Source: Carpediemonas membranifera BICM
Lineage: Eukaryota; Protista; Fornicata
Assembly: GCA_019828565.1 (NCBI GenBank)
Contig: JAHDYR010000003.1
Coordinates: 124,001 to 188,000, forward strand
Direction of reading: 5' to 3'
Length of the DNA stretch: 64,000 nucleotides
Position 1 is the first letter of the stretch. Each line of letters opens with the position of its first letter. The position numbers and the translations under genes are program-made. The notes below the pieces were generated by a model. The model saw only the letters and a program-made list of their open reading frames with translations. It did not search any database and was not told where the DNA came from. Of this stretch, positions 14,201 through 64,000 are shown in pieces.

Positions 14201-17200
14201 CGTTGCCGCCCGATGACTGGAACACGATGGCCGTGCGGTCGCTGTTGGTCACGGCGAGGGTCGTCGCGGCAGCCAGGCACGTGCTGTTACAGATGGACTC
14301 GACGCTCTGGAGGCCAGTGCACTCGCAGATGCCTGTGTCGGCATTGAACTCACCAGTGCCAGTGGAGCAAGCAGAGGCGCAGGCGGAGGTGCTGGCTGAG
14401 GCAACACAGGCGCCATAGGCGTCGCGGGAGTAGCCAGTGTCGCAGCGGCTGTAGACGATCTCCTGGCAGTCGACAGTGGAGTCGCCCGTCATCACGTTCT
14501 GGGACTGGTCGTAGTACTCGTAGCCGGGCGAGCAGACGCAGGACCCGTCGGACGTCTGGAAGGCGCGGTTGGCGCCCGTGCACGTGCAGACGGTGGCCCC
14601 GGCCTTGGAGTACGAGGACGCGCCGCACGGGCTGCACTTCGAGGCGCCGGCGACGTTGTTGTACGAGTCAGCCTCGCACTCGGTGCATGCCTCAAGGGAC
14701 GTGCCGCCCGCGGTCGACCGGTAGGTGCCGGTGGGGCATGCGCTCGTCGTCGTGGCGCCGGCCAGGCAGTAGTACCCGGCAGGGCAGACGTAGCCCTTGG
14801 TGCCGTCGGTGGGGTTCGACACGCCTGAGCCCTCGAGGCAGATGTAGCCTGCGTCGCAGAGGGCCTTGGTCAGGCGGGCCTCGTCATTGCAGTAGTAGCC
14901 TGCGGGGCAGATGATGCAAGCCGAGTCGAGCGAGGCCTTGTCGTTGGTGGTGCTGTCGGGGTTGTAGTAGTAGCCGAGCGGGCAGAGGGTCGGCGACTCG
15001 GACCCCTCGGGGCAGTAGTAGCCCTCGGGGCACTCGTACTTGTAGATGACAGTGACGTCGTCCTCGTCGGTCTCGGGCTCGCAGTAGTAGCCAGCAGGGC
15101 AAGTCACACAGTCGGTGCTCGCGCCAGCCTTGACGCCGTCGAAGTAGGTACCAGAGGGGCACAGGATCGGGGCGGGTGTCGCCTCGGGGCAGTAGTACGA
15201 CTGGGCGCACGGGGACGTGGCGAAGTCGGACATGCCCACGGCATCACAGAAGTAGCCGGCCGGGCAAGTCAGGCAAGCGCTGATGTTAGTGGCGCCCTCG
15301 ACGGGGTTGTATGAGCCTGTGGGGCAGTCCTGGGGGTCCTTGTTGTATGGGCAGTACATGCCAGGGCTGCACAGGGAGGGGGAGTCGCCCGTGCACTCGT
15401 AGCCGGCGATGCAGGGCTCGCACTCGTCCTCGGAGATGGCGCCGGTGCTGAACGACCACATGTTCTCGGGGCACGCCACAGGGTAGTCAGTGCCAGAGGG
15501 GCAGTAGTAGCCGAGCGAGCACATCGAGCCGGAGGGCGTCGGCGTGGCAGACCCACCCGAGCAGTAGTACCCGGCCGTGCAGTTGGCCGTGACGGAGCCG
15601 TCGGAGCAGTAGCTGCCGGCGGGGCATGAGGCGCACTGGCTGGCGTCGTCGAGGCCGGTGGAGGTCGAGTAGGTGCCGGCGACGCACATCAGGGGAACAG
15701 AGGTGCCGGTCGGGCAGTAGTAACCTGCGGGGCAGACAGTCGGCGTGGACGCGCCGTCGCGGCAGTAGTAGCCCGCGGTGCACGTCTTGCAGGTGGCCTG
15801 GCCGGTCGAGCTCTGGTAGTAGCCGTCGGCACATGCGATGGGCTCGTCGGAGCCAGCAGGGCAGTAGTTGCCGACAGGGCACTTATAGCTCGAGGGGTTG
15901 GGTACGCTCGACCCAAGGTTCTCGGGGCAGTAGTACCCGGCGTCGCAGGTGCCAGTCGGGGCGCTGAGGCCCTTGGAGCCGCAGTAGTAACCCGCAGTGC
16001 AGGCGCCGCAGTCGTCACGCTTGTGCCGCCAGTGCTGGGGTTCATGGTCCCAATCGGGCATGCCGTGGCGGCAGAAGAGCCCAACCTCGCAGTAGTAGCC
16101 AGCGGGGCAGGGGACGTTACCGGCCTCGTCGTCGGGCATGTCAGACTCGGCGCCGCCAGGGCAGACGTAGCCGGCCTTGCACTGGCCAGTGGGGGCGGTG
16201 AGGGCCTCGCCGTTGCAGGCGTAACCCGGATCGCACTTGGTGCAGCTGCCGGAGCTGGCCAGGCCGGTGGAGTTCGAGTAAGTGCCGGCCGGGCAGTGGT
16301 GCTCTGTGGCGGCCTCGGTGCCGGTGGGGCAGTAGTAGCCGGCTGGGCACATGTAGTTGGTATACGCTGTGGTGGCCCCAGGGCAGTAGTACCCGGCCAC
16401 ACATGTCTTGCATAAAGTCTGTCCGGCGGTGTCCTGGTACGTCCCAGCAGCGCACGGGGCCGGGGAGGTAGACCCGGCCTCGCAGTAGTAGCCGAGTGGG
16501 CACTTGTTGCCGGTCGTGCCGTCAGTGGGGGCGGATGTGGAGGCACCCGCAGAGCAGTAGTAGCCCTCGGCACAAAGCGAGGCGTACGTTATCTGGCCCT
16601 CGGTGTCGCAGTAGTAGCCGCCGGGGCAGTCAAGGCAGTCGGCGAGGGAGCTGCCGCCCTTGGTCGGGTTGTAGGTGCCCGTGGGGCAGGCCGTCTCCTC
16701 GTAAGACCCGGCCGGGCAGTAGTGGCCCTTGGAGCACTGGCCCCCGGTGATGCCGTCCGTCGGGTTGGTGATGGACGCGCCGCCGATGCAGTAGTAGCCG
16801 GCGTCACAGTCGGCGTTGGCTACGGCGAGGCCCTCGACAGTGCAGGCGACGGCCTCCTCACAAGCGGGGCAGTCGGCTTCTTCGCTCAGACCGGTGTAGT
16901 TCGACGCGGTGCCAGCGGGGCAGGGGTGTGCTGTGCCGGTAGTCGACCCGGCAGGGCAGTAGTACCCGGCGGGGCACTCAGTGGGGTCTACCGTGCCGAG
17001 CTCGTCGCAGTAGTAGCCCGCGGGACAGGACTTGCATGTGCTCTGGCCAGTGGCGTCCTGGTATGTTCCAGCTGTGCAGGCGGTCGCCTCAGATGATCCG
17101 GCGGGGCAGTAGTAGCCAACCGGACACTTGTCTCCGGTGATGCCGTCGGTTGGGTCGGGCACAGACGCGCCGGTCTCGCAGTAGTAGCCGGCCGAGCAGG

Positions 17201-20200
17201 ACCCTGTGACTGTGGTCTGGCCGGTCCTCTCGCAGTAGAACCCGCCGCTGCAAGGGGCGCACTGGGATGCTGACTGGCGGCCAGCGGCCGTGCCGATGGT
17301 GCCGGGCGGGCACTCGGTCGGCACTGCAGTGCCCTCCTCGCAATAGAACCCGGTCGTGCAAGTCTTGGCGGCGTCAGAGGGAGTCGTCGCGCCCTCTTCG
17401 CAGTAGTAACCAGCGGTGCAGACGTCGTTGGGCGCAGTCAGACCAGTGGCCGAGCAGACCTGGCCAGCAGGGCACAGCAAGCACTGATCTTCGGCCTGGA
17501 GGCCCGTGGTGTCAGAGTAGGTGCCAGCCGGGCAGGGTGTGGCAATTGTGCTGCCCTCCTCGCAGTAGTAGCCGGCGGGGCAGACCGTACCGACGTCGAG
17601 GCCGGTGGTGGCACACGTGTAGCCGCTGGGGCAGGGTTCGCACGTTGACATTCTCTTGTCGGGCTGGAACGTACCGGCCTCGCAGGCGACGGGGGACGTC
17701 GAGCCGGCCGGGCAGTAGTGACCGACAGGACAGATGTCTCCGGTGGTGCCGTCGGTGGGGGTCGCAGTTGACGCGCCACCAAGGCAGTAGTAGCCGGCCA
17801 TGCAGTCGCCAGTGCCTGCTGCCGAGTTGATGCCCGTGGAGGCGCAGTACTTGCCGGCGGGGCAGTCCGAGCAGTCCTCTGGGCCCTCACCGCCGGTGGA
17901 CGGGTTGTAAGTGCCGAGACCGCATGGTGTAAAGGTGCTGGACCCCTCGGGGCAGTAATAGCCAACGGGGCACTCAGCTCCAGTGACCTCGTCAGTCGGG
18001 GTCGTCGTGGAAGCACCGCCTGTGCAGTAGAAGCCGGCAGCGCAGTCTCTATCAGGCGTAGACAGGCCGGTCGTCGTGCAGACCTTGCCAGCAGGGCACG
18101 GTGCGCACTCGTCCTCGGCCTGGAGGCCGGTGGTGTTGGAGTAGGTGCCGGCCGGGCAGGGGTTCGAGTACGGCAGGGAAGTGCCAGCGGGGCAGTAGTG
18201 GCCCGCCGGGCAGATGAGCGCAGCAGACATGCCCACAGCGTCGCAGTAGTACCCTGAGGGACAGGTGTCGCAGGTGCTCTGGGCGACGTCGGGCTGGTAC
18301 GTGCCGGGGTCGCACTCCTGGTAGGTGGTCGACCCCGAGATGCAGGCAGACCCGGCGGGGCACTCATCGCCTGTCATGCCGTCCGTCGGCGCGGGTGTGC
18401 TTGCTCCGCCAAGGCAGTAGTAGCCTGCGGTGCATGACCCCGTGACTGAAGTCAGTCCTGCAGTCGCACAGTACTTGCCTGCAGGGCAGGAGGTGCATTC
18501 GCCGCTTGTCTGCAGCCCAGTGGCTGAGCTGTAGGTGCCAACGGGGCAGTCGGTGCCGGCAGAGGACCCGGCAGGGCAGTAGCGGCCGGCCGTGCAGACG
18601 TTTCCAGTCGCGCCGTCAGCCGGGGTTGACGTGGATGCACCGGACGCACAGTAGTAGCCGGCAGTGCAGTCGCCCGTGACCGCGGTGTTGCCAGTGCCAG
18701 AACAGTACTTCCCGGCGGTGCAGGCGGTGCACTCGCCGCTAGAGGCGAGGCCAGTGATGTTCGAGAAGGATCCTGCGGGGCAGGGGTTGTCGTAGCGGGA
18801 GTCCTGGCCGCTGAGGCAGTAGTAGCCTGCGGGGCACTCAATGCCGGCAGTCATCTCGGTGTTGGGGCAGTAGTACCCGGCGGGGCAGTCGGCGCACGTG
18901 CTACCGCCGCTGTTGGGCTGGAAGGTGCCCGAGTCACAGGGGACGGGCGCCGCAGACCCGGCCTCGCACATGGAGCCGGCGGGGCACTTGTCTCCGGTGA
19001 GACCGTCTGTTGGGGTGGGGGTCTTCGCGCCGCCCGAGCAGTAGTACCCGGCGGCACAAGCGCCAGTGACGGCGGCGAGGCCGGAGCTGCTGCAGTAGGA
19101 CCCGGCCGTGCAGCTAACGCAGGCACCAAGGTCGCCACCGGTGGTGCCGGAGTTATAGGTGCCCTTGGGGCATGCAGTGGGTGACGATGAGCCAGCGGGG
19201 CAGTACTTGCCGGCGCCGCAGACGTTTCCAGTCGTGCCGTCAGTCGGGGTGGACGTGGTCGCGCCAGACACGCAGTAGTAGCCGGCCGAGCAGTTGCCCG
19301 TGGGGGTGGCGAGCTGAGTGGTCTCGCAGTACTGGCCGGCAGTGCAGGGCGTCTGGAAGGACGACCCAGCGGGGCAGTAGTAGCCGATGCCGCACACGGT
19401 CGTGGGTGTCGCCGAGTCAGTGCCGGAGGGGCAGTAGTAGCCCTCGGGGCAGGAACCGCTGGGGGCAGTCAGCCCAGTCGTCTCGCAGTATGACCCTGCG
19501 GTGCAGGACTTGCACTGGGACTGGGAGGTGCGGCCGGTGGACGCTGAGAACGTGCCGGCAGAGCAGGAGTACTGTGTTGCCGACTCGGTGCCGGCAGGAC
19601 AATAGTGGCCGGCGGGGCAGACGTTGCTGGCGTATGTGGCAGTGCCCTCGGGGCAGTAGTACCCAGACACGCAGGTCTTGCACGTGCTCTGGCCGTCGAT
19701 ATCCTGGTAAGTGCCCGCGGCACAAGCAATGGGGGCACCCGTTGCAGTGGGGCACATGTGGCCTGCGGGGCACTCGTCGCCGGTCGACCCGTCGATGGGG
19801 TTCGGGGTTGTCGCGCCGCTGGTGCAGTAGTAGCCGGCCGAGCAAGGTCCGCTCACGGCGGACAGGCTGGAGCTGCCGCAGTAGTAGCCTGCAGTGCAGC
19901 TTAGGCAGGCGTCGAGGTCTCCGCCCGTGGTGCCGGAGTTATAGGTGCCCTTGGGGCATGCAGTGGGTGACGATGAGCCAGCGGGGCAGTACTTGCCGGC
20001 GCCGCAGACGTTTCCAGTCGTGCCGTCAGTCGGGGTGGACGTGGTCGCGCCAGACATGCAGTAGTAGCCGGCGGCGCAATCTCCAGTCGGTTCCGTCCGA
20101 CCAGTGGCGCCGCAGTACTTGCCAGCAGTGCATGGGGTCGGGGCAGAGGAGCCGGCCGGGCAGTAGTACCCCTCGGGACAGATGACTTCAGCCGCCGAGG

Positions 20201-23200
20201 AACTGCCGGCGGGGCAGTAGTAGCCAGCAGTGCAGTTTCCAGTGGGCTCGGTCAGGCCAGTCGTCTCGCAATACTTGCCGGCAGTGCAGGAGGTGCACTG
20301 TCCAGGGGCCGACCGGCCGGTGGACGCTGAGAACGTGCCGGCAGAGCAGGAGTACTGTGTTGCCGACTCGGTGCCGGCAGGACAATAGTGGCCGGCGGGG
20401 CAGACGTTGCTGGCGTATGTGGCAGTGCCCTCGGGGCAGTAGTACCCAGACACGCAGGTCTCACACTCGCTCTGGCCGGCCTGTTCCTGGTAAGTGCCCG
20501 CGGCGCACGGGATGGGGCTGCCTGACCCGGACACGCAGTAGTAGCCGGCAGGGCAGATATTACCAGTGGTGCCGTCGATGGGGTTGGCAGACTGGGAGCC
20601 GCCAGTGCAGTAGTAGCCCGCCGAGCACAGCTCAGTGGGTGTAGACAGCGAGCTGGAGCTGCAGTAGGACCCGGCCGTGCAGCTAACGCAGGCACCAAGG
20701 TCGCCACCGGTGGTGCCGGAGTTATAGGTGCCCTTGGGGCATGAAGTGGGTGACGATGAGCCAGCGGGGCAGTACTTGCCGGCGCCGCAGACGTTTCCAG
20801 TCGTGCCGTCAGTCGGGGTGGACGTGGTCGCGCCAGACACGCAGTAGTAGCCGGCCGAGCAGTTGCCCGTGGGGGTGGCGAGCTGAGTGGTCTCGCAGTA
20901 CTGGCCGGCAGTGCAGGGCGTCTGGAAGGACGACCCAGCGGGGCAGTAGTAACCAGCAGAGCACTGGGCACCAGTCGTATCAGCCGGCGTGGCCGTCTCG
21001 GCAGACCCGACACAGTAGTAACCCGCGGCACACTCCCCCGAGACATCTGTCTGGGCGGTGTTCTCGCAGTAGTAACCGGGGTCGCAGTCGGTGCAGGCGT
21101 CCAGCTCAGTGAGGCCAGTCGCCGCGCCGTATGTGCCAGCGGGGCAGCTGTAGAGGTGCGGGTCCGTCGTCGAGACGGGGCAGTAGTAGCCTTGGGGGCA
21201 TGGGGTCAGCGTGTAGTCGCCTGTGCCCGACAGGCAGTAGTACCCGGCGGGGCAGGCCGTACACGAGGTCTGGCCGGCCTGGTCCTGGTACGTGCCCGCA
21301 GCACACGGGACGGGGCTGCTGGTGCCGGTGGGGCAGTAATAGCCGGCGGGGCATATGTCGCCAGTGACACCATCAATGGGCGTGGCGGAGGTCGCGTTCT
21401 CTGTGCAGTAGTAGCCGGCCGTGCACTGGGTGCCGACAGCCTCCATGTGGTCGTCGGGGCAGTAGTACCCGCCGGTGCAGGGCTTGCAGTCGTCCGCGGA
21501 CGCCTGGTTGAGCTGATCCTGGTAGCCCCCGGCCTCGCACGGTTCGGGGGCGCTGGACCCCTCGGGGCAGTAGTACCCCTTGGGGCAGTCGCCGCCGGCA
21601 GAGTCGGCGCCGTAGGCGTCAGTCGCGCCACCGGGGCAGTAATATCCCTCCTCGCAGAGCAAAGTCGCGGCTGACAGGCCAGTGGTGGGGCAGTAGTACC
21701 CGGCGGTGCAGCTAACACAGTCATCGACGGACTGAGCGAGCGTGCTGGGGCTGTACGTGCCAGCGGGGCAGTTGGTGCCGCTAGACGACCCAGCGGGGCA
21801 GTACTTTCCGGCGGGGCAGTCGGTTGGGGTCGACGTGGTGCTAGCACAGTAGTAACCTGCCGGGCATGTCTTGCATGTGGCGAGGCCGGACACATCGGCG
21901 TATGTGCCGGCAGAGCATGGCGTCTGGACAGATGAGCCAGCTGGGCAGTAGTACCCAGCGCCGCAGATGTCACCCTCGCCAGAGGCGGCGAGCGGTGTCG
22001 AGGACGTCGCGCCGCCCGAGCAGTAGTAGCCCTCTGCACAGTCACCAGTGACGGCGGCGAGGCCGGTGGTCTCGCAGTACTTTCCGGCAGTGCACTCCAC
22101 GCAGTCTCCGAGGGCGTCGGCGCCCTGGCTGTTCAGGAATGTCCCGGCGGGGCAGGCGAGCGGGCTTGAGGTCGCGTCAGGGCAGTAGTACCCGGAGGGG
22201 CAGCGGTCGCCGTAGGGTTGGCTCACAGGCGCGGGCTCGGTGGAGGAGCCTGAGCAGTAGTACCCGGCCGTGCAGTCGCCAGTGGGTGTGTCGAGCAGGC
22301 CGGCCGTCTCGCAGTACTGTCCACCAGGGCATGCCGTGCACTCAGACAGACTGGCGAGCCCGCTGGCAGTGGCGTATGTGCCTGCGGGGCACGAGGTCGG
22401 TACTGGACCCGGCGGGGCAGTAGGACCCCTTGGGGCAGGTCTGGGTCGAGTCCATGGCCGAGTTCGGGCAGTAGCTGCCGGCGGGGCAGGGCAAACAAGA
22501 CCCTTGGCCGGCCTGGGGCTGGTACGTGCCGGGGTCGCAGGGGGACTCGGCGATGGCGCCCTCCTCAGAGTAGTGACCGACGGAGACCTCGAACTGGGTC
22601 GGCGTGGACGAGCCGCCAGTGCAGTAGTACCCGGCGGCACAGTAGCCTGTCGTGGCGTTCTTCTCTGAGCCGGCGCAGTAGGACCCGGGCGGGCAATCGG
22701 TGCAGTCCGAGGCGTACCGGGCGCCCGTGTACGGGTTGTACGTCCCGGCCGGGCAGTTGGTGCCGGTTGCTGAGCCCTCGGGGCAGTACTTGCCGACGGG
22801 GCAGGGGCCGCCGGTGGGCAGGCCGGGGGGCGCTGAGGTGTAAGCCGCTCCCACGCAGTAGTAGCCGCGGTCACAGAGGCCGGTGGCGGCCGAGAGCCCG
22901 AGACCATCGCAGTATGACCCGGCGGGACAGTCGATGCAGTCCTCAGTGGACTTCATGCTGAGGGAGTTGCCGTAGGTGCCGAGAGGGCAGGGCTGGGGCG
23001 TATAGGACCCCTCGATGCAGTAGTAGCCGTTCGGACAGGCGACTGGATCGGCTGTCGCAGTGGGGCAGTAGAAGCCGGAGGGGCAGATTGAGCATGCGCC
23101 AACCTCACCTGCACCGGTCAGGTTGCGGTAGGTTCCGGCAGGGCATGAGATCTCGGTGGACGCCGACGACCCCGCGGGGCAGTAGTAGCCCTCGTCGCAG

Positions 23201-26200
23201 ACACCAGTGACAGCAGACTCGCCGCCGACGCAGTATGACCCGGCGGGGCAAGTCTCGCAGTCGCCCTCGGCCTCAGCGCCAGTGGTCGACCTGAACGCGC
23301 CAGGAGGGCAATCCACAGGGGCGGCGACACCGGCCTCGCAGTACTGGCCAACGGGGCAGGGCTCGTTGGTCAGCTCGGGGATCTTGTCCTGGCCCGTGGG
23401 GCAGTAGAGCCCGGCACTGCAGACCTGGGCGGTCATCTCAGTCTGGGTGGTGGTCTCGGTCCAGCAGTAGTGGCCCGCGGTGCACGAGGTGCAGGCAGAC
23501 GCACCCGAGGCAGAATATGAGCCGGCCGTGCACTCGGCGGGGTCAGAAGTCTCCAGCCCGCAGTAGTACCCGGCGGGGCACGTGGCGCACTCAGACCCGA
23601 GCACGCCTGGCCCCGCACTCTGGGCGCCCGTGACGCTGGAGAATGTGGTGGCGGGGCACTGGGTTGGGGCGGAGCTGCCTTCGGGGCAGTAGTTCCCAGT
23701 GGGGCAGGGGTCGCAGCACAGGTCGTTCTTCTGGCCCGTCAGAGGGTTGTATGTGCCGGCCGCACAGGGGTGCTGGGTGGCAGATGAAGTACCCTCAGGG
23801 CAGTAGTGGCCTGCAGGGCAGGGCGAGGTCGGGTCAGTCGAGGCCTGCAGACAATAGGAACCCTCAGGGCAAATAATACAGTTGGCAGCAGATATCTGAC
23901 CCGTATTGTTATTGAATGTTCCAGCAGCACAGGGGTACTCCGTGTCAAACGTCGTCCCGGCCGGACAATAGTGGCCAGTTGGGCACGTGGCAGGGGGGGT
24001 CGTGCCGCCCGTCCCTTCGAGGCAGTAATACCCCTCGGGGCAAATCTCGCACTCGATCGAGTCTGTCAGATTCGTCAGGTCAGTGAATGTCCCGGCCGGG
24101 CAGGGGTACTCCGTGGTGGAGACGGTGCCGGTGGGGCAGTAGTGGCCGGCCGCGCAGGATATGACAGGCGTGACGGTACCAGTGCCGGAGCAGACGAAGC
24201 TGGCCGTGCATGCCGTGCAGCTGGCCTGGGAGCTCCCGCCCGTGGTCTCGCGGTACGTGCCATCCGGGCAGGGGGTCGGGGCCGTTGAAGCCTGGAGACA
24301 GTAGTGGCCGGCTGGGCAGGTCTCGCAATCTCCGGTGTTCTCAGCGGCGACGTTTGAATAGAACGAACCAGCGGGGCACGGTGTGGCGGCGTAAGAGCCG
24401 GCGTTGGCCTCGCAGTAGTAGCCTGCCGGGCATGGAATCTCGCGGGATGAGCCAGATGGGCAGTAGAAGCCAGCATCGCAGTCGATGCAAGTCGCGGATG
24501 AGGTTGCCCCGGTCGTGGGTGAGTACGTTCCTGCGCCGCACGGGTTGGCGCGAGCAGTGGCAGTGCCGTCGGGGCAGTAGTACCCAGCGGGGCAGACGTA
24601 CTTGTCACCCTGGTCGGCGGGGTTTGTGATGCCGGAGGGGCAGTAGTATCCCTCAGGGCACGTGGTGCACTCACCGGCGGCACCCAGGCCAGTTGAAGCT
24701 CCGTAAGTGCCAGCGGCGCAGGGGAACTGCGCGGTCGTCCCGGAGAGGCAGTAGTACCCGATGGAGCAGATCGACGCGGCAGGGGTGGCCGTGTCGGACG
24801 TGGCCGGGCAGACGTAGCCGGCGTCACAGGCAGTGCAGGTTATCGCACCCGCCTCCGAGTAGGACCCGGCGGGGCAGCCAGAGGGGCCGCTGGATGCGGA
24901 GGGGCACTCGTAGCCGGCCGGGCAGATCGTGCAGGTCGTGGCGCCCTCGGCAGAGTACCAGCCCGAGGCGCAGGCGACGGGCGCGACACTGCTGTCGGCG
25001 CACTTGTAGCCAGCGGGGCAGGTGGTGCAGATGGTGGTGCCGCCGAGCGAGTACGATCCCGATGAGCAAGCCTTCATAGTGCCGACCTTATCGGGGCAGT
25101 AAGACCCGGTGTCACACGCGGTGCAAGACGTCGCACCGCCGGTCGAGTACTCACCAGCGTCACACGCTGTGACAATGGCGGCATCGGTGTCGGGGCAGTA
25201 GTAGCCTTCGGGGCAGACAGTACAGGCTGTCGACCCGGCAACGGCGTACTCACCGGAGGAGCAGGCTACGGGCGTGGAAACGGTGTCAGCACACGCAGAC
25301 CCAGCGGGGCACGTGGTACATGAGGTGGACTTTGCCAGCGAGTACTGCCCGAGGTCACAGGGCACGCGGTCAGAGATGCTACCACTGGGGCAGGCGTACC
25401 CGGCCTCGCACGGCGTGCATGAGGTGGCCCCGCTGTCGGAGTACTCGCCCTCAGCACATGCAGTGACTGTCGCGGCGTCCGTATCCGGGCAGTAGAAGCC
25501 CTCAGGGCACTCGGTGCAGTCTGTCGACCCAGCCTCGCTATAGTAGCCAGCGAGGCAGCTGACGATGCCAGTGCCGTCGGCGTTGGGGCAGGCCTGACCA
25601 GCGGGGCACTCCGTGCAGGCGGTCGCGCTCCCGGTGGAGTAATAGCCTGCGGCGCATGCGACAATACTGTCTGCGGGCGTCACGGCGTAGTACCCGGCGG
25701 GGACTGCGAGGCAGGCGTAGGTCGTCGGGTTGACGTACTGGCCGCTGGAGCAGGCCACGGGGGCGGAGGACGTCGTCGGGCATCCGTAGCCCGCCGGGCA
25801 GGTGGTGCAGGATGTGTCACCAGCCAGGGCATACGTGCCTAGCGGGCACGTTGTGGGTGTCGCCGAGCAGGTTGACCCGGCCGTGCACTCGGTGCAGGAG
25901 GTTGACATGGCTGTCGAGTAGAAGCCAGCGGGACAGGCCGTCGCAGTGGTCTTGTCAGAGCATTCGTAGCCGGCGGGACATGCAATGCAGGACTGCTGAC
26001 CAGTGGCGCTCTGATAGTAGCCGTTGGCGCAAGCGACGTGCGCCTCGTCGGGGCTGGGGCAGTAGTACCCGGCCTCGCAGTCGACGCACGACTGTCTGTT
26101 CGAGGCCACGTACTGGCCGTCCGCACAAGCACTCGGCGACGCCGGATCGGAGCACTCGTAGCCGTCAGGACACGTGCTGCACGAGGTCGACCCGGCGGGC

Positions 26201-26740
26201 GCATAGGACCCGGCCGAGCAGGCCACGGGAGACGAGGACGGCGTGGCACACTTGAATCCCTCGGGACAGACAGTGCATGACGTCGCGCTGCCACTGGAAT
26301 AGTAGCCGTATGAGCATGGGACTGGCGCGGACGTCGTCGTAAGACACGCGGACCCGGCGGGGCACGACGTGCACGTTGATGCACCACTGAGCGCGTATGT
26401 GCCGCTCGAGCATGTCAGACAGGACGACGCGCCGGCACTCGAGTAGGTTCCAGCGGGGCAGGTCGCACACGCCGAACCAGCAAGGGAGTACGTGCCTGCC
26501 GCGCAATCTGTGCAGTCGGAAGCTGCCGTAGAGCCAGTACCAGAGGTAGATGTACCTGCTGAGCAGGCTGTGGCCGTATATCCATCGGTGCAACTGTGTG
26601 AGGGGGAATGCGGCAACGAACTAAAACCCTGAGGGGCAAGGGAGACATTCGCCGATGAAATCGGGATGGACGTATTCTCCAGCCGAACACGCCAAGGCCA
26701 CCGCGATAAAGAGAGAAATTAACAGGATAAGCTTCTTCAT
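8223..26740 (-). CDS. Giant cysteine-rich (GCC2/GCC3, ephrin-receptor-like repeat) type-I membrane protein, ~6,160 aa; frame interrupted by 6 small indels
   Basis: Signal peptide MKKLILLISLFIAVALA from ATG 26740, intron 26594-26621, ~4,000 aa of CxAGxYC repeats, TM helix at ~13440-13515, long cytoplasmic coiled coil. Reconstructed from ORFs 22342..26616, 11109..22907, 10619..11743, 8443..11232 and 8223..8837. Confidence 0.85.
19090..20951 (-). repeat. Internal tandem duplication (~785-nt period) in the Cys-rich gene
   Basis: ~19090-19382 near-identical to ~20659-20951; ~19927-20056 is a third partial copy; ~19532-19678 matches ~20315-20461. Confidence 0.9.
26594..26621 (-). other. Spliceosomal intron, 28 nt
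   Basis: GTTCGT...CTCAC-ACAG; removal gives CPSGF-Y-CTDG, matching the repeat consensus and attaching the signal peptide. Confidence 0.9.
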
Positions 26741-44904: not shown

Positions 44905-47247
44905 CTACTTCTTCTTCTTATGAACACGCTTCCCCCTCTTGACGCCCCGCATGGTGTAATGAACCACGGCCTTGCTGACGACGGTGGTCTGCTGCTCCTC
45001 GTCCGCCTCTTTGGCCACCTTCGCCGCGATCTTCACCCTGTTCTGAATCTCAGCGGGGATCGAATCTATTGAGATCTTCATGGGCTTGAGATTCTCCCTG
45101 AGATTGAGCTTGGTCGAGCTCTGCTCCAGCACGGCGAAGTCCTCGAGCTGGCTCTCCTTCACCAGCAGGAAGGCGTTGCCCGTCCTGCCCGCCCTCGCTG
45201 TCCGGCCGACCTTGTGGACGTACAGCTCGGGGTTGAGGGGCACGTCGCACTGGATGACGACCTCAACGAAAGGGATGTCGAGGCCTCTGCTGGCCACGTC
45301 CGTCGCAACCAGGACATTGGCTGTGCCGTTGGCGAAGCGGTTGAGGTACTCCATGCGCGTGTCTCTGTCCAGCAGGGAGCAGAGAGGCACGGCCTTCATG
45401 GACGCGCCCTCGCCCCAGAAGGCGTTGACGAGCAGCGCCACACGGATGGCCTCCTCCTTCGTCGGTACGAACACGATGTGCTTATGGCCGGCATTCAGCA
45501 TCATGAGGTGGATGAGGATCACATTTTGCAGGCCCTCGTGCTTCCGTCTGATCATTATCCTGCTCTGCCGCAGCGTGTCGACGGTGCCCTTGTCGACCTC
45601 GACGAGCGTCCACTTCTCTTCGCCAAGGACCATGTTCCTCAGATGAGCAACCTTCTCGTCGATGGTGGCGCTGAAGAGGGCGGTCACCCTGTTCTCCGAT
45701 CTCGGAATCTGGGAAATAATCTCCCGAATCTGCTCCAGGAATGACTTATTCAAAAGCTGGTCAGCCTCGTCGAGCACCAGATACTGCAGGTTGTTGAAGT
45801 ACGTCTTGATCAGAGCACCGTTGGGGCCTGTGAACTCAGCGAGCAGCTTGCCGGGCGTCGCCACGATGAAGTGCGGCCTATCCGAGAGATCAATGAAGCA
45901 TGGCTTGCCCTGGTGCTTACCGCTGGTCAGCGTCAGGACGTTCACCCGCTCCCCCACGATCCTACTGACGCTGGTGATGACCCCGGCGATCTGGGCGGCG
46001 AGCTCCTTGGTGGAGACGAGCACGAGCGAGTAGAAGCTGGGGCGGTCGGGGTTGGCGATGAACTTGTCCAGCATCGGGAGCACGAAGGCGCCGGTGTTGT
46101 GCGTGACGACCATCTCGTGGTTGATGACGAACCGTCTGTTGCCGTCGATGGTGAAGCCGTAGTAGTCGCCCACCGGCAGCCGCTCGACCGTGAAGGCCTG
46201 GCGGTGGTGGTCAGGCTGGGGGCGACTGGACTCAACCCGCAGAGGAAGGCGGGTCAGGTCGCCCGTGATCTCGCCCGACTTGGTCACCACCAGGCCCAAG
46301 GAGCGGGCCATGAAGGCGGCGTCGTCGACCAGACCCCTGGAGCCGGACTGGTAGCCGTTGGTGTCGACCAGGCCGGCCAGACACTGGCGCCGGGCCTCGG
46401 CGGGCCCGTACTTGATGGCTGGGGGAACGCGCTTGCCGTACGGACGCATGGCCTCGACGGGGTCGCGGTTGGGGAGGAGCTCCTCGATCGCCTCGAGGAC
46501 GGCGGCGGGGGTGTCCTCGGGCATGGCGTCGTCCCAGGCGGCCCCGAGCCAGGCCCCGACGACGTATGGGTGGACGGGGACGGCGGGGTCGGCCCGGCCG
46601 TGGAAGGAGAGCTCGGGGGCGATGACGGCCTTGAGCTCGGCCCGGATGGCGTCGGGGAGGGCGAAGTAGGATTCGACGGAGATGTCGAAGACGCCGTCCG
46701 CCGGGACGTTGAGGGGGTTGCCGACCACGGACGCCAGCCAGCCCTCGGCGACGGCCTTGGTGTCGAACTTCTGGGACTCGAGCTGGATGGCAGTAGCGCT
46801 GCCGTCTAGACCCAGGCTGAGTCTGTACGCCGCGGCAGCCCAGCCCTTGCCCTCGACCTCGGCCAGGCGCTGGGGCTCGGGCAGGGCTACCGTGAGAATG
46901 TGCGACATGTTGCATCTGAAGACCGCGCCGCCCTCTAGGGTGACTCTCGCCATCTCCTGGCGGCCAGTGGTGACGCTGGTGACGAGGCGGGGCGTCCCAT
47001 CGTCTCCCATGAGCCTCTCGCCAGCAACAATGTCCTGAACAGGTTTGAACTCACCATTAGCCATGAGAACAGGAGTATCTCTGGCCAGGCACTTGCCAGA
47101 GCCTGTCTTGGCGCTGCCGACCGCGTTCTCTCCCCTAGCGATGACCGGGATAACACGGCGCTGGACCTCGTATGGCTCTTTCCAGTCCATAAGAGTAACA
47201 GACTCTTCAATATCCTTTGACAGGCCGAGGTCTTGCCAAACGCCCAT
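44905..47247 (-). CDS. DEAD-box RNA helicase (Rrp3/Dbp8/Drs1-like), 780-aa precursor containing an intein; 448 aa after splicing
   Basis: Q motif, AKTGSGK|T split by the intein, TKELA, ATPGKL, DEAD, SAT, TDVASRGLD, HKVGRTARAG. Subfamily not resolved. Confidence 0.93.
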   Translation of the reverse strand: MGVWQDLGLSKDIEESVTLMDWKEPYEVQRRVIPVIARGENAVGSAKTGSGKCLARDTPVLMANGEFKPVQDIVAGERLMGDDGTPRLVTSVTTGRQEMARVTLEGGAVFRCNMSHILTVALPEPQRLAEVEGKGWAAAAYRLSLGLDGSATAIQLESQKFDTKAVAEGWLASVVGNPLNVPADGVFDISVESYFALPDAIRAELKAVIAPELSFHGRADPAVPVHPYVVGAWLGAAWDDAMPEDTPAAVLEAIEELLPNRDPVEAMRPYGKRVPPAIKYGPAEARRQCLAGLVDTNGYQSGSRGLVDDAAFMARSLGLVVTKSGEITGDLTRLPLRVESSRPQPDHHRQAFTVERLPVGDYYGFTIDGNRRFVINHEMVVTHNTGAFVLPMLDKFIANPDRPSFYSLVLVSTKELAAQIAGVITSVSRIVGERVNVLTLTSGKHQGKPCFIDLSDRPHFIVATPGKLLAEFTGPNGALIKTYFNNLQYLVLDEADQLLNKSFLEQIREIISQIPRSENRVTALFSATIDEKVAHLRNMVLGEEKWTLVEVDKGTVDTLRQSRIMIRRKHEGLQNVILIHLMMLNAGHKHIVFVPTKEEAIRVALLVNAFWGEGASMKAVPLCSLLDRDTRMEYLNRFANGTANVLVATDVASRGLDIPFVEVVIQCDVPLNPELYVHKVGRTARAGRTGNAFLLVKESQLEDFAVLEQSSTKLNLRENLKPMKISIDSIPAEIQNRVKIAAKVAKEADEEQQTTVVSKAVVHYTMRGVKRGKRVHKKKK
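46096..47091 (-). mobile_element. Intein (332 aa, VMA/Hint type) with degenerate LAGLIDADG homing endonuclease
   Basis: Starts CLARDTPVLMANG...MGDDGTPR; block B CNMSHIL; block F DYYGFTIDGN; ends VVTHN followed by Thr. Excision restores GSGKTGAF. Confidence 0.96.
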
Positions 47248-47565
47248 CGCTCGCCAGATCGCGGTTAAAGTGCGAAATGACGATAACAACCGTTGATAGC
47301 GGAGGAGAGTAGATATATGTGCAATGAAGCAACCAGCCAGTAACAACGCCTCACTGTGCTCGATTTCCAAACTAGGAGTGTCCCGGGGCCAACCCTCAAT
47401 GACGGCCAGCCCGCTCAAGAGAACTCAAGCCACGGTGCGGCGTCATCATGGCTGCCCGTTGATGACATGGGTGGCTGTATGCGCCATTCGGGTCCGTTTT
47501 AGCTTTTCGATATTTGGCCACAGCCGCGGGCTACAAAACGTGATTCAAGCAATAAGAAGAACAAA
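47248..47565. promoter_or_regulatory. Probable bidirectional promoter region
   Basis: 318 nt between divergent ATGs at 47247(-) and 47566(+); A-rich just upstream of 47566. No specific element identified. Confidence 0.45.
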
Positions 47566-48588
47566 ATGCCAAGATATTGTGGCAAGTACGTGCCAAACAG
47601 CTCTACTAACGCAGACCGTCCGTTATTCTCCTCCTAACTCACCCAGAACGTGTGTTTCTTACCCTCATTGACTATTATCCAGCCAGTTTGTCCAAAATTC
47701 CACAGTTTACTCAGGTAGTGCGTTCTACAGCATTCTCCTAACATAGCGAGTTCGTTCCCATCCACCATCCCTCTTATCCAGCGAGTTTGTCACCTCCTGC
47801 TAGTCTCACACAGCGCGTCCGTAGCTCCATTCCAGCCTAACACAGCGGGTACGTGATACATAGCCCATTTACACAGCAAGTACGTCCCTTTAACCCACCC
47901 TCACCCAGCGGCATGTTTGTATCCCCGCCTTGACCGTTACCCAGCCAGTAAGTTCACGCAGCTTTCCCTCACACAGCCAGTATGTTGCAACATGAACTAC
48001 CCATGTCTTACCCAGTTGCAAGTATGACCTTCATCCACCCTTCTTACGTAGTTCCAGCCAGTACGTCCCCAACACGCCCTCTGACACAGCCAATGTGACG
48101 AGTGCAAGCGAGTCGATGACCTCATCCACAAGGCCACGACTGACAAGATCACCATGGAAACCGAGATCCAGATCATCCCCCGTGACGAGACGAAGACCAC
48201 CATTGACGATCTCCTGAAGGTTATCACCCACATTGCCGAGGAGAACAACATCCCCAAGAAGTTCGAGATGCGGCTGACGGACCCCCACCTCACCGAGAGC
48301 CACTCGTGGAAGGAGTTCTTCAAGCAGCTGCTCACCGGTCACCCCGCGATCACCGTCAGTCTCAACAGTGACGGGCAGTTCGTATCAAACCCTGAGAACG
48401 CTGAGGTTATGGCCCTTGCTAATGAGATGAACTCCCACCTCTGCTGCGCCTACCACGGCCCGCAGGCGACGTTCTCGACCGTCGGCACTCCTAGGTCCCA
48501 GATCACCCAACTCATCTCACAGCACGTGGCCGAGATCGCCGAGCTCAACGAGAAGCTTGTAGCCATCGCCAAGTCCCGTAAGGAGTAA
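47566..48588 (+). CDS. Micro-exon gene: 16 exons/15 introns, 190-aa protein with an N-terminal Cys/His motif, function unknown
   Basis: Exons 47566-47585, 47615-17, 47647-49, 47683-85, 47715-17, 47747-49, 47782-84, 47814-16, 47846-48, 47877-79, 47909-14, 47945-47, 47977-79, 48016-21, 48052-60, 48090-48588. Spliced: MPRYCGKPTQYDDAGNGIHHCNSSHQCDECKRVDDLIHKATTDKIT, continuing in frame into ORF 48154..48588. Confidence 0.88.
47586..48089 (+). other. Tandem array of 15 tiny spliceosomal introns (28-36 nt), all phase 2
   Basis: Lengths 29,29,33,29,29,32,29,29,28,29,30,29,36,30,29. 14/15 donors are GTNNGT (one GTATGA); 15/15 end TNAY-NYAG. Same architecture as introns in conserved genes of this window. 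Confidence 0.92.
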
Positions 48589-48623
48589 GTTGACCAGTAA
48601 ACAGTGGTGCGTGTCTTTACCTG

Positions 48624-59185: not shown

Positions 59186-62100
59186 CTAACACCAAGATTC
59201 AGCCACACAGGCCAGCAGCACAGGGACGTCGGAGATGCGGACGTCCGACAGAGCAGCAAACTTGGTGTATACCTCCATCTCATCCTCGATATACGTGGTA
59301 CGTAAATCACACAATGTGGCGAAATCCATGAGGCCTGTGCTCTTCGCCTTCGACGCGGGATCGGTCCCCTCCTCGATCTGCTTACTGAACAGCAGGGCAG
59401 AGTCGAGCGCCATAACGTATGCCGTCCAGAGGTCTTCCTGGCTGTCAAAGGGTGCGAGCGCCTGGACGACGTTGTTCACAGCATCGGGCTCCTCGTCGGC
59501 CGCGGTGACAGGAGCGAAGGGGGCGAAGGGGCCGGCCGTGAGCATCCAATCGCGGGCCTCGCCGAGCTTTTGTCTGCGGCCCAGGAAGATGGAATCGACC
59601 AGCTGGAGGGCTCCGACGGCATGGCACATCGAGACCCCCGAGAGCAGGGGCGACGTCGGCATGTCGAGCTTCTTGATGACAGCGTTGAGGTCGTGCTGGG
59701 AGGAGTGGACGACCTTCATGGCGATGTCGAGCAGCCCGCGTGCCTCGCCGAGGTCCACGTCTGTTGCCCGGCTGAGCCTGCTGAACAGCTCTGGCTGGGG
59801 CGGCTGTTGCGGGATATTGGCCTTGAATATGTCTATCGGATCAGAGACCGGCGGGATGATCTTGTAGATACGGAGGAGGCTGTCGAACTCAGCCTGGGGT
59901 GGGCAGAACGTCAGCGTCCACTCAACGAGGGCGTCTGTGGTGTCCTGTACCCGGAATGAGGGCCCGAAGAAGAGCTCGAACGACGGGGACGCGATGGCGT
60001 ACGACTCGACCGGCAGGGTCGGATCCGTCCCGCCGACCATGAAGTGGCGCACCTGCTTGCCGCCGAGCTTGGCGTTGTGGGTCATTCTGTAGACATCGGT
60101 GAAGAAGTCATCGGCGGACCGCACGAGCTGGCGGAGGAATCGGCGGACAAAGAGGCCGTTGGGCGTCTGGTCGGGCTTGAAGATGCCCGTGGGGACGTCG
60201 TCGGCGTTGTCGGAGTCGAACACGGCCTTCCCCGGCTGAGAGTGGGCAATAAAGGCCCTGGCGTACTTCTGGACAGCAACATGCACGGACGGTCTGGACA
60301 GCCTGAGGTCCCTGACGACGGAGCCGAGCTCATCCTTCTCGCAGCGGCGGACGACGGCGAGGATGTCTGGGAGGTGGCAGATGCACTCGTGCATGGCATC
60401 GGCCTTGTTACGGACGATGAAGTCCGTCGTCGATGTGACGTCCGCGAGGGTACAAGCGGCCCTATGCTCGACGGCATTCAGGCCGGGGCAGTCGAGGAGG
60501 GCATCCATCGTCTCGAGCTGCTTGACGGCGTCCACGGTGCCGATGATGTCTCTGACGCGGCTGATGGACGTCATCGCCATGAGGCGGTCTCTATGGTAGG
60601 GGAGAGTGTCGATGAGGCTGTGGTACGCCTTGTTGAACTCCAGCTCCCACTTGTTCCTGCTGTCCGCCGTATTGAACGACGTGACACAGACCTTGGCCAT
60701 GTGGATGAACAACAGGTGTAGCAGAATCCACATCTCGTCGACCGACTGCACCTTGCCCGCTGAGTGGGTCAGGGCGAGGTTGGTGAGGCTCAGGGCCTTC
60801 TTGTGCGAGATCTGGTCGCCGTGGATGGAGAGTAGGAGGATTCTGGCCATGGTGGTGACCCCGACGGTGCTGAGAGAGCGTACCGCGCCCGCTGGAATGG
60901 TCTCCGACCGGATGATCTCGATCGAGTCCTTGAAGGCGGCGGCGTCGGTGTTGTTGGCGACCTTCACCGAGCCACTTAGGGGGTTGTGGTGCGTGCCGCC
61001 GACCTGGGCCCCGCAGCTGACGCATACGCCGACCTGCATTGGCATGCTGCATTCGCCGATAAAGAAGGGGGTGCCGCACTTGGTACAGACCCATTGTGCC
61101 ATCCGCTTCCCGTCGCTCATGACCCGGAACACCTCCTGGGTGGCGTCGTCGTCGGTAGGGAGGAATGTACCCCTCATCCTGTCGCCTGTGGCCATGGCCT
61201 GGACCCAGCCCTGGGTCTGGTCGGAAGTCGCCACGCGATGGCGGAACACCTTGAGGCCAGCCGCGCGACTGTCGTTGAAGTCGTCATCAGTGAAGCCAGC
61301 CTGCTTGAGCTGCTTGAGCATATCCATCGGGTCAGTGGCGCTGACCTTCTCCCACTCAATCATGAGGGGCGCCATGGCGGCGGGCCAGTCGGGCTTGAGG
61401 ATGGATTGCAGGCCAGGGATGGATGCAAAGCCGAACTGCCCGGCCGTGAGCATGACCTCGAGCTGGGAGAGACCCTTGGCCTCGAGGACAGAGGAGAGCA
61501 CGTGGGCAGTGGCCTTGGCCATCGACACGCCCTCACCGGCCCGCTGGACCTTAGCCTGGGCGGCGTGGCATATGTCCGCGACGGCGTGGGCGAGTGTCTG
61601 GTTGGCTCGAGGCCAGTCACTCGTTAGAATGGCGACAGCCTGCTGGAAGACACCGACGAGCAGTGCCTCTACGCCTTCCATGGGCGTGTTGTGCTCCACG
61701 GCCACCTTGAGATGAACCAGGATGCCGGGCAGGATGTGGTGCTTCGACACAGGCAGGGCAGCCGTCACGGCCCGGCCGATGGTGGCCATGGTCGAGGCAG
61801 CGGCGTACCTCACCGTGTGCAGGGCGCCATCCTCCTGGGCGTGGGGGGTACCGTCGCCGAACAGGGTGGGCATCCAGTCGTGGTTCTCGGCCCCGCTGAT
61901 CATGGTGTAGCAGGCGAGTGGCGGCGTGAGCATGAAGAGTGCAGCCCGGTCGGCGTTGTACTTCATGCATCGGTTGAACACCATGTACACGCCCTTATCG
62001 ATGCCCTCGACGGTACCCGAGAGCGTGAGGATCATGTCCAGGGCCCTGGGGACCATGGAGTTCAGCCACGTCATACTGTGGGGGGCAAAGTCAAGTCGAC

Positions 62101-64000
62101 TGACAACTCTGTCGATCACATGGTCGACAAAGGCAGTCAGCCATAGACTGTCGGGCTTGCTGTTGAAGAAGCCGCTGTACTCTATGGACTCTGGCACTGC
62201 GATCGGGGCCCACAGTTCATACCAGAGCTCGGCGACGGCCGCCATGAGGGCTGTGGGGTTCATGGTGATGGCAGACTCCGTGTTGGGCTGTGACAGGGCC
62301 GCCGCAGCCACCGTCTGTGCGAGAACGGCGCTGATGCCCATGAGGATCTTGAGGGCATACGGGGAAAGATCGGGGTGGGTCATGGCCTGGTCGACCGTCT
62401 GGACGGGCACCTCGTAGCCGGCATCGGGGTCGGGGTCGCTGTACTCGGACGAGTCGGAGGAGTAGTCGCTGTCGTACTCACTCGAGTCGTCTGAAGTCGC
62501 CTCGAAGTCAGAGTCGGAGTCGGAGTCAGAGTCGGAGTCGAGTTGCCAGCGCTTGGCTCTGCGTCGTTCAACAATGTCGGAGTCATCTGAGTCGCTGTCC
62601 GACTCGCTCGACTCGGACTCAGCAGTGGAGTCGTCCGCGGGCTTGGCTGGGATCATCTCGAAGATGTCTGTGAGGATAGAGCTGTCCAGGGCGAGCTTGC
62701 AGCACATGTTGACGTCCACGGCGTTGCACATCTTTGTCAGGCGTGCGATGATGGTGACCATGGAGCATGCCGCTTGGAGGATGCGGGTGTGCTCGTTGGG
62801 CTTGAGTCCGACAACTGTCTGGACGCTCTTCATCGCCATAAAGGTCGAGGCGAGCAGGACGGCGGTGGGGATGGCGCTGAGGGAGTCCTTGTCCGCCTTG
62901 ATGAGGCGGACGGCGATACCGGCGGCCCGGTTCATGAGGGCGTTGGCGTTGAAGGTCTTGCCGTTGACAACCGTGGCGCACGAGACGACGTGCTTCATGA
63001 GGGCGAGCATTCCGAAGTTGGACTGGCCTACGACGGAGACGGCGGCGATGACAGCGGCGACGGACCGTTTCTTGGGCACCAGCTGGCACGCGGTCTCGGC
63101 AATAAACGTGACGAGGGCGTGGTCGTCACTCTGGAGCTGGCGGAGCAGGTCGTGGGCGTACACCGCGGCGAACTCATGCATGGCGTCGTTTCCTACTGTA
63201 ATAGCGGAGAGTTCCTTGGCGAGGTCAGACGCGCCATCCTTGAGGAAAGCCTCGAGCAGCGTCACTCTCTGGATAATGCTTTCGTGGTGCTCCATCATCG
63301 TCTCCCGCCACCGCTCAGTCTCGGCGAAGATGGCGTTGCTGAAGGGGAAGAGCAGGGTGGCGGGGCTGCGGGTGAGGGTGACCTTGAACGTCTGGCCCAT
63401 CGGGGAGGTCGAGGACTTCCCCACAGCCACAAAGACGTGGTGTTCAGCGAGCCTTGACCACAGCTCGTGCCAGGCCTTGGCGTGGCGGGCTGGTTTGACG
63501 ACAGAGGACAGGTTATGGCACGTGTCGAGGCTGGCGATGACGAACCTGAAGGCGAAGAGCACCTTGTCCATTATGACGGCCTTGAGGTGCTTCTTGAGAG
63601 AACCCTGCTTGCTGCCAGTGGCCTTGGCCTCTGCCTTCATCCAGTCATCCATAAATGACATGAAGATCTCAGCGTCTTCGGGCTGCTTGTCATGGTCCAG
63701 CACGAGCTGCTCAGCCAGATGATACACGACCCGCCTCATCCTCTTGTTCCCAGCGAGAGTCCTGGCCACTTCGTCAGCGTGCGTGCGGTCCTTGGAGCTT
63801 GGATCATGCACCGTGTGCTTCAGGGCGTCGAGGATGTCTGCCCGCACCTCGTCCGGGTTGAGGGTATCACAATCCAGCCTCTGTCTGACAATAGCGGCGG
63901 TGTCGGCCTCGCTGACCGTCCATCTGTCGCACGTGTCATCGATATGGTAGTGCTCCCACTTCCCGTCGAAGCTGCGGACGATGTCAGCTGGTCTGAACCT
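59186..64000 (-). CDS. RNF213 (mysterin)-like giant protein, C-terminal part with RZ-type finger; 5' end outside the window
   Basis: Frame is open to the window edge; FDGKWEHYHIDD resembles the RNF213 post-AAA motif as recalled; RZ-like WVCTKCGTPFFIGECSMPMQVGVCVSCGAQVGGTHH at ~60985-61094. Confidence 0.75.
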   Translation of the reverse strand, partial: RFRPADIVRSFDGKWEHYHIDDTCDRWTVSEADTAAIVRQRLDCDTLNPDEVRADILDALKHTVHDPSSKDRTHADEVARTLAGNKRMRRVVYHLAEQLVLDHDKQPEDAEIFMSFMDDWMKAEAKATGSKQGSLKKHLKAVIMDKVLFAFRFVIASLDTCHNLSSVVKPARHAKAWHELWSRLAEHHVFVAVGKSSTSPMGQTFKVTLTRSPATLLFPFSNAIFAETERWRETMMEHHESIIQRVTLLEAFLKDGASDLAKELSAITVGNDAMHEFAAVYAHDLLRQLQSDDHALVTFIAETACQLVPKKRSVAAVIAAVSVVGQSNFGMLALMKHVVSCATVVNGKTFNANALMNRAAGIAVRLIKADKDSLSAIPTAVLLASTFMAMKSVQTVVGLKPNEHTRILQAACSMVTIIARLTKMCNAVDVNMCCKLALDSSILTDIFEMIPAKPADDSTAESESSESDSDSDDSDIVERRRAKRWQLDSDSDSDSDSDFEATSDDSSEYDSDYSSDSSEYSDPDPDAGYEVPVQTVDQAMTHPDLSPYALKILMGISAVLAQTVAAAALSQPNTESAITMNPTALMAAVAELWYELWAPIAVPESIEYSGFFNSKPDSLWLTAFVDHVIDRVVSRLDFAPHSMTWLNSMVPRALDMILTLSGTVEGIDKGVYMVFNRCMKYNADRAALFMLTPPLACYTMISGAENHDWMPTLFGDGTPHAQEDGALHTVRYAAASTMATIGRAVTAALPVSKHHILPGILVHLKVAVEHNTPMEGVEALLVGVFQQAVAILTSDWPRANQTLAHAVADICHAAQAKVQRAGEGVSMAKATAHVLSSVLEAKGLSQLEVMLTAGQFGFASIPGLQSILKPDWPAAMAPLMIEWEKVSATDPMDMLKQLKQAGFTDDDFNDSRAAGLKVFRHRVATSDQTQGWVQAMATGDRMRGTFLPTDDDATQEVFRVMSDGKRMAQWVCTKCGTPFFIGECSMPMQVGVCVSCGAQVGGTHHNPLSGSVKVANNTDAAAFKDSIEIIRSETIPAGAVRSLSTVGVTTMARILLLSIHGDQISHKKALSLTNLALTHSAGKVQSVDEMWILLHLLFIHMAKVCVTSFNTADSRNKWELEFNKAYHSLIDTLPYHRDRLMAMTSISRVRDIIGTVDAVKQLETMDALLDCPGLNAVEHRAACTLADVTSTTDFIVRNKADAMHECICHLPDILAVVRRCEKDELGSVVRDLRLSRPSVHVAVQKYARAFIAHSQPGKAVFDSDNADDVPTGIFKPDQTPNGLFVRRFLRQLVRSADDFFTDVYRMTHNAKLGGKQVRHFMVGGTDPTLPVESYAIASPSFELFFGPSFRVQDTTDALVEWTLTFCPPQAEFDSLLRIYKIIPPVSDPIDIFKANIPQQPPQPELFSRLSRATDVDLGEARGLLDIAMKVVHSSQHDLNAVIKKLDMPTSPLLSGVSMCHAVGALQLVDSIFLGRRQKLGEARDWMLTAGPFAPFAPVTAADEEPDAVNNVVQALAPFDSQEDLWTAYVMALDSALLFSKQIEEGTDPASKAKSTGLMDFATLCDLRTTYIEDEMEVYTKFAALSDVRISDVPVLLACVAESWC

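Follow-up and report, generated by a model that had tools for sequence, protein, structure and literature searches.

An array of fourteen microexons in a gene of a Carpediemonas-specific family

Arrays of codon-sized exons have been described for the nank genes of Tuber melanosporum, and the passages that cite them report extensive alternative splicing (cited in PMC4986451, PMC13449251). The MEGs of Schistosoma carry 10–20 short, mostly symmetric exons of 3n length in a row and are missed by automatic annotation; their exons mostly measure ~15 nt, their introns 0.1–5 kb, and they encode secreted proteins with signal peptides and have documented isoforms (bioRxiv 10.1101/2023.06.21.545858). For Carpediemonas, a literature search retrieved no papers on microexons. 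The genome of Carpediemonas membranifera has been assembled into 69 contigs with 24.2 Mb and 57% GC (PMC8516963).

Here we describe a gene of the free-living metamonad C. membranifera in which 14 microexons are separated by 15 canonical GT..AG introns at positions 47586–48089 (+) of the window, i.e., the whole stretch of 64,000 nt that was analysed. The gene is similar to Tuber nank in that many consecutive codon-sized exons occur in a lineage-expanded, repeat-domain signalling family of a microbial eukaryote. With a probability of roughly 0.65, we regard it as an expressed, constitutive gene of a Carpediemonas-specific family, whose array would have grown by duplication of a unit of one intron plus 3 nt, whose skippability would be a by-product of this growth, and whose product would be a zinc-knuckle adaptor or decoy. 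The array appears to be extreme in layout but fixed, and not a shuffler of 16,000 protein variants.

Structure and transcript of the array gene

The joined reading frame extends from the ATG at 47566 to the stop codon at 48586–48588 and comprises 190 codons. The microexons measure, in order, 3, 3, 3, 3, 3, 3, 3, 3, 3, 6, 3, 3, 6 and 9 nt and sum up to 54 nt. The original prediction of one residue per exon between 47615 and 48060 is correct with respect to the array itself and to the phase of its introns, but only 11 of the 14 exons are single codons, the others being two of 6 nt and one of 9 nt. Intron lengths range from 28 to 36 nt (29 nt in 9 of 15) and the donors within the array are mostly spaced by 32 nt. 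The donors read GTNNG[T/A], and the 3′ ends consist of a branch-like element directly before YAG. Phase 2 holds for the end of exon 1 and for all 15 introns; a splice-signal parser without phase constraint returned the identical 15-intron model. Overall, the array turns 504 nt of pre-mRNA into 54 coding bases, and introns interrupt 15 of 19 codons in a row. Together, the 14 tiny exons encode a stretch of 18 residues within a predicted zinc-binding motif.

Exon 1 (47535..47585, +), with the transcript 5′ end at ~47535, encodes residues 1–6, including the first cysteine (C5), and two bases of codon 7. It is followed by intron 1 (47586..47614, +; 29 nt), a phase-2 intron in codon C1+2 whose position is common to nearly all parsed paralogs. 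Nine successive 3-nt exons (47615–17, 47647–49, 47683–85, 47715–17, 47747–49, 47782–84, 47814–16, 47846–48 and 47877–79) occupy 47615..47879 (+), and introns 2–9 (28–33 nt) lie between them, with a total length that agrees with the RNA joint. Further downstream on the same strand are a 6-nt exon without an intron in its Gly17 codon (47909..47914) and a pair of identical 3-nt exons (47945–47 and 47977–79, spanning 47945..47979) which flank intron 12. The second 6-nt exon (48016..48021, +) contains Cys21 and is equivalent to the 3-nt Cys exon of the paralogs fused to the next 3-nt exon; it may have arisen by precise intron loss. The 9-nt exon (48052..48060, +) corresponds in size and position to that of paralog L044, and intron 15 (48061..48089, +; 29 nt, phase 2) lies at position C2+4, which is shared with the group-A paralogs and L044. 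The last exon (48090..48612, +) starts with the equivalent of the paralogs' 6-nt exon, followed by a CxxC, an alpha/beta domain of ~70–100 aa, a C-terminal helix and the stop codon. Its start would reflect the loss of an intron in the Cys27 codon. This ordinary, uninterrupted exon holds most of the CDS. The database protein for the locus has 144 aa and starts at a downstream ATG (48154), so that the array is missing.

Genome-wide pattern scans detected runs of at least three clear 3-nt exons only in the array gene and in one decayed paralog (C54:5934xx), and the run in the array gene is not due to chance. Outside the family, the genome-wide count of 1–6-nt exons is uninformative, with 87 matches versus 83 in the control. 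Candidates for 1-nt exons with branch/acceptor and donor consensus were observed at G000:C10:282586, C20:5088, C23:97060, C39:1126453 and C54:119978; their overall count equals that of the control.

RNA data were available as assembled contigs from four runs (X1–X4) of one 2017 sample. In X1, X2 and X3, contigs join 47585 to 48090 with exactly 54 letters in between, a joint that is known by its letter count and not by the letters themselves; the contigs have no depth over 47606–48064. These contigs begin at 47535 after a non-genomic tag of 21–22 nt, presumably the 5′ adapter of the cDNA library, and poly-A tails are found at 48612–48613. The poly-A end of the gene overlaps or abuts the 3′ end of a convergent minus-strand gene (window 48605–48613).

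No combination of the exons other than the complete set of 14 sums up to 54. We also considered a candidate in-frame acceptor at 48057, which would shorten the last microexon from 9 to 3 nt and limit the array to a maximum of 48 nt; this variant was rejected, since the contigs show 54 and not 48 letters. Moreover, the 9-nt form yields the spacing C-x5-C-x2-C, as in the group-A paralogs and L044. If introns are limited to 26–40 nt and donors to those with +5G, a single splice path leads to 54 and another single path to 48. Under looser rules, 4 paths (introns ≤60 nt), 376 paths (≤80 nt) or 11 paths (any GT donor) give 54. The 54 letters correspond to all 14 exons added up, so that the dominant mRNA is best read as the form that includes all microexons. 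Assembled contigs drop minor isoforms because bubbles are removed. In X4, the deepest run, exon 1 is not covered by any contig, and the contig starts 4 letters before the last exon. This break could hide heterogeneity near the array, but as X4 likewise has gaps within the constitutive last exon, it proves nothing either way. Among the assembled contigs, none that retains an intron was seen.

A Carpediemonas-specific family and its Cys-rich module

Searches of the genome assembly (24,237,836 nt in 69 contigs) with the first 70 residues of the last exon matched 31 places; a second query matched 53 and a third 141, the last number counting internal domain repeats. The family comprises more than 30 genes, most of which encode large WD40/ankyrin/kinase proteins and are clustered on a few contigs; a RhoGEF tail was found in one more distant paralog by a splice-pattern scan. 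All named homologues are labelled C. membranifera. Outside this species, phmmer revealed no homologue among 1.84 billion proteins apart from one unrelated repeat protein at E 1e-4, and a profile search of proteins of 0.55–1.75 times the query length revealed none.

The N-terminal module of the paralogs has the motif C-x2-C-x4/5-C-x2-C and is split by 3–4 introns. Parsing without phase constraint gave only phase-2 introns at 30 of 32 paralog loci, the two exceptions being degenerate copies, and internal exons of 3, 6, 12, 15 or 39 nt (3+12+6 nt in group A, 3+15 nt in group B). The 3-nt exon of the paralogs supplies the TG of the second cysteine. Compact members such as KAG9397012.1, KAG9396940.1 and KAG9389540.1 have one such exon and share with the array gene the N-terminal module and the phase-2 introns at C1+2 and, in group A, at C2+4. 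In contrast to the array gene, they have a C-x2-C loop, 3–4 introns and WD40/ANK/kinase or RhoGEF tails. Compared to groups A and B, the array gene lacks the introns in the second and third Cys codons and has 13 additional residues and 12 additional introns between the first two cysteines.

Two further members carry several introns in this loop. L044 (C13) has seven phase-2 introns, a 12-residue loop and exons of 3, 3, 27, 3, 9 and 6 nt, of which the 9-nt exon is the same as in the array gene; its last acceptor reads CAT in the assembly. L083 (C54) has four 3-nt exons and looks decayed, and its phase is ambiguous: phase 2 requires a GA donor and soon meets a stop codon, phase 0 an atypical 24-nt intron. 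Loop residues and loop introns increase in parallel and amount to x2/1 in groups A and B, x4/3 in L083 (if phase 2), x12/3 in L044 and x15/13 in the array gene. Non-canonical sites (GA donors, a CAT acceptor) occur at otherwise intact positions in L056, L059, L083 and L044 and may represent decayed copies, assembly errors or real non-canonical splicing. Apparent exon shuffling is seen in L006 (G000:C5:68351) and L014 (C5:324170): both start with another Cys/His-rich exon in place of the knuckle, and this exon is attached through the same phase-2 intron that interrupts the third Cys codon. Inside the second intron (~63 nt) of the group-B paralogs L002–L020 lie an acceptor, a stretch resembling a short exon and a degenerate donor, which looks like the permanent skipping of an exon with fusion of its two introns. 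Furthermore, the public protein models P0002, P0003, P0005, P0006 and P0008 read through microexon introns, which hides the CxxC motif, and their N-termini are probably wrong. Database N-termini are thus in error for the array gene, with its downstream start, and probably also for many paralogs.

The array gene itself is single-copy and stands alone, without a WD40/kinase or RhoGEF tail. Its spliced model has the pattern C-x15-C-x5-C-x2-C plus a His, and the N-terminus encoded by exon 1 and the microexons appears by inspection polar and Cys/His-rich, without a hydrophobic stretch. Judged from these residues, the array would encode the loop of a Cys-rich zinc knuckle that heads the family, and the protein may bind zinc through C5/C21/C27/C30 or a neighbouring His. 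One guess is that the tailless protein has an adaptor or decoy role towards the large members of the family. Family and fold searches used the last exon as query. It has no Pfam match; its predicted fold reached a pLDDT of 83 with an alignment of 36 family sequences and 37 from the single sequence, and the model found no match among known folds (Foldseek best E 0.59; VIA best Z 4.5; Atlas TM 0.36). Its alpha/beta domain of ~70–100 aa would therefore appear to be novel and specific to Carpediemonas, as far as sequence and model can tell.

The neighbours in the window are ordinary eukaryotic genes, mostly long uninterrupted ORFs; a viral origin, suggested by the long ORFs and an adjacent intein, was discarded on these grounds. 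The intein (Hom_end Hint, ~330 aa, Cys start, His-Asn end) interrupts the Walker A motif of a DEAD-box helicase (44905–47256, −), which it splits between GSGK and T. The helicase gene is oriented head-to-head with the microexon gene, with ~310 nt between the start codons. A long ORF with an RZ-type zinc finger (RNF213/ZNFX1-like) is located at 59186–63847 (−). At 11109–26616 (−), two overlapping ORFs of great length (3932 and 1424 aa) contain Cys-rich repeats of the ephrin-receptor-like type; they probably belong to a single giant surface protein that is interrupted by a frameshift or an intron.

Consequences of exon skipping and intron retention

The original prediction stated that all 2^14 skip combinations of the array are in frame and stop-free, with TA as the only stop-prone prefix. 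Recomputation over all 16,384 exon subsets agrees on each of these points. The frame is kept under skipping because the exons lie between same-phase introns, which is automatic. Because several exons are identical, the number of distinct mRNAs and peptides is 9,184 instead of the maximum of 16,384, a reduction that had been anticipated. Single skips lead to 12 distinct products. As proposed, neighbour choice can recode a codon, since skipping of exon GTA turns Gln into His; another single skip, that of the 6-nt exon at 48016, deletes Cys21.

Avoidance of stop codons was considered as a sign of selection and rejected, because it is at chance level: of 6,357 real 19-codon coding stretches cut identically, 65% are also stop-free under all skips, as are 40% of synonymous recodings of the array peptide and 27% of codon shuffles. 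Such tolerance is common here because third codon positions are mostly C or G.

The in-frame arithmetic could nevertheless serve a diversifier at codon resolution, in which microexons are skipped, either under regulation or stochastically, so that a recognition module comes in many loop variants, as a convergent counterpart of Tuber melanosporum nank. Every exon is symmetric and 3n, and the WD40/ANK/kinase proteins of the family have expanded in clusters within this lineage alone. Moreover, the fifteen introns were retained where other positions lost theirs, and the X4 contig is broken near the array. However, X1–X3 contain unbroken contigs of all-included length, and a computed skipping rate of 10% per exon would leave the full-length form at 23% of mRNAs. 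The single constitutive isoform that had been named as evidence against a diversifier is therefore approached, with the all-included form as the sole transcript length in contigs that hide minor isoforms. Any skip also requires an intron of 60–72 nt, compared to a local mode of 28–30 nt; introns of 45–63 nt, which the paralogs appear to use, make skip-sized introns physically possible. Furthermore, the array is confined to one small gene instead of extending through the receptor-like family, combinations are wasted where neighbouring exons are identical, and loss of the exon at 48016 removes a likely zinc ligand. We consider a diversifier unlikely, and the same doubt applies to a narrower form in which a minority, regulated fraction of transcripts skips 3-nt exons and provides a zinc-knuckle loop repertoire for an adaptor tuning the WD40/kinase receptor-like family. 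If such skipping were true, codon-scale diversification would have arisen a second time, independently of Tuber nank.

The alternative offered in the original prediction, a splicing-efficiency sensor or timer that tolerates skipping, fits poorly, given the intron lengths that skips require and given that retention of an intron is the more probable way for splicing to fail. A modified version would measure splicing capacity through 15 serial splicing events, its output depending steeply on efficiency and its failures being lost by retention and not tolerated by skipping. The computed values are compatible with this idea: retention of a single intron truncates the ORF in 14 of 15 cases, and serial removal of 15 introns gives 46% full-length mRNA at 0.95 per intron and 21% at 0.9. 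Yet retained introns truncate ORFs by default, the assembled contigs showed none with a retained intron, and nothing links the gene to stress or splicing control, which makes this version very improbable.

Proposed growth of the array and relation to known systems

For the constitutive reading, the spliceosome would recognise the ~29-nt introns one by one (intron definition), leaving exon size unconstrained, and all exons would normally be kept. Recognition across very short introns is established for short-intron unicellular organisms. The ancestral state would be a single phase-2 3-nt exon between the first two cysteines, as in the compact paralogs, where a pair of similar introns separated by 3 nt gives a 32-nt unit able to misalign. 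Repeated tandem duplication of this unit of intron plus 3 nt, by slippage or unequal crossover, would each time have added one residue and one phase-2 intron. The loop would thereby have expanded from 2 to 15 residues and from 1 to 13 introns, and the copies would later have diverged, with precise loss of a few introns. That exons can be skipped in frame would then be a by-product of array growth.

Duplication of such a unit would explain phase, spacing and loop growth together, as it fixes the phase automatically from ancestral phase-2 introns. By independent insertion, the chance of all twelve extra introns being in phase 2 is ~(1/3)^12, or ~2 in a million. The comparison with paralogous arrays that had been suggested revealed phase 2 there as well; being automatic and inherited, this uniformity provides no evidence of selection for modular skipping. 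Apart from their C-rich/G-poor composition and 3′ consensus, the array introns display no mutual similarity (permutation p=0.07), and in the family tree the array gene lies on a long unresolved branch that does not fix the direction of change. The duplication would therefore be old.

This leaves room for a constitutive gene of other origin, either through independent insertions into an already long loop or from an ancestral state of one intron per codon, with the other genes losing introns and residues. The dissimilar introns and the unresolved polarity are in line with it, as are the precise intron losses evident in the family and the long loop of L044 with its uninterrupted 27-nt exon. On the other hand, independent insertion fails to explain one phase-2 intron per codon, confined to ~20 codons in an intron-poor neighbourhood, and the compact C-x2-C form is present in both large clades and several divergent members. 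We regard such an origin as rather improbable and favour growth by unit duplication.

Even if fixed, the array gene is near the limit of exon-intron architecture. Parasitic members of the group to which Carpediemonas belongs have almost no introns. Spliceosome footprints in the array should overlap neighbouring introns, which makes the gene a natural substrate for studies of splicing order among minimal introns around 3-nt exons and of the means by which exons are kept from being lost. Moreover, the family series with 1, 3, 3 and 13 introns and loops of 2, 4, 12 and 15 residues represents a test bed for intron gain and loop growth by duplication of intron plus codon.

Overall, the array gene resembles nank in layout, with consecutive codon-sized exons (11 of 3 nt among 14) whose length is supported by RNA. 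It differs in architecture, nank being of the NACHT-ANK (NLR) type and the array gene a small stand-alone gene of an unrelated lineage and protein whose array encodes a Cys-knuckle loop; no NACHT domain was found among the families listed for the paralogs (up to 25 per list), which include WD40, ANK, kinase and RhoGEF. Extensive alternative splicing, the defining trait of nank, is reported in the citing passages, whereas the array gene shows only the all-included length in assembled contigs from three runs of one sample. With the MEGs it has in common a run of 14 symmetric 3n microexons, all flanked in phase 2. Unlike the MEGs, its introns measure 28–36 nt, its exons are mostly 3 nt in contrast to ~15 nt, most of its CDS lies in one ordinary exon, and its polar Cys-rich N-terminus does not, by inspection, resemble a signal peptide of a secreted protein. 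MEG isoforms arise by skipping of central exons, whereas the array gene displays the all-included length only, in contigs which drop minor forms. The gene is therefore a member of neither group; it is nank-like in layout, and the MEGs are looser relatives. Codon-sized exon arrays were already known, and the architecture described here, missed by the database model, is new for the Carpediemonas lineage.
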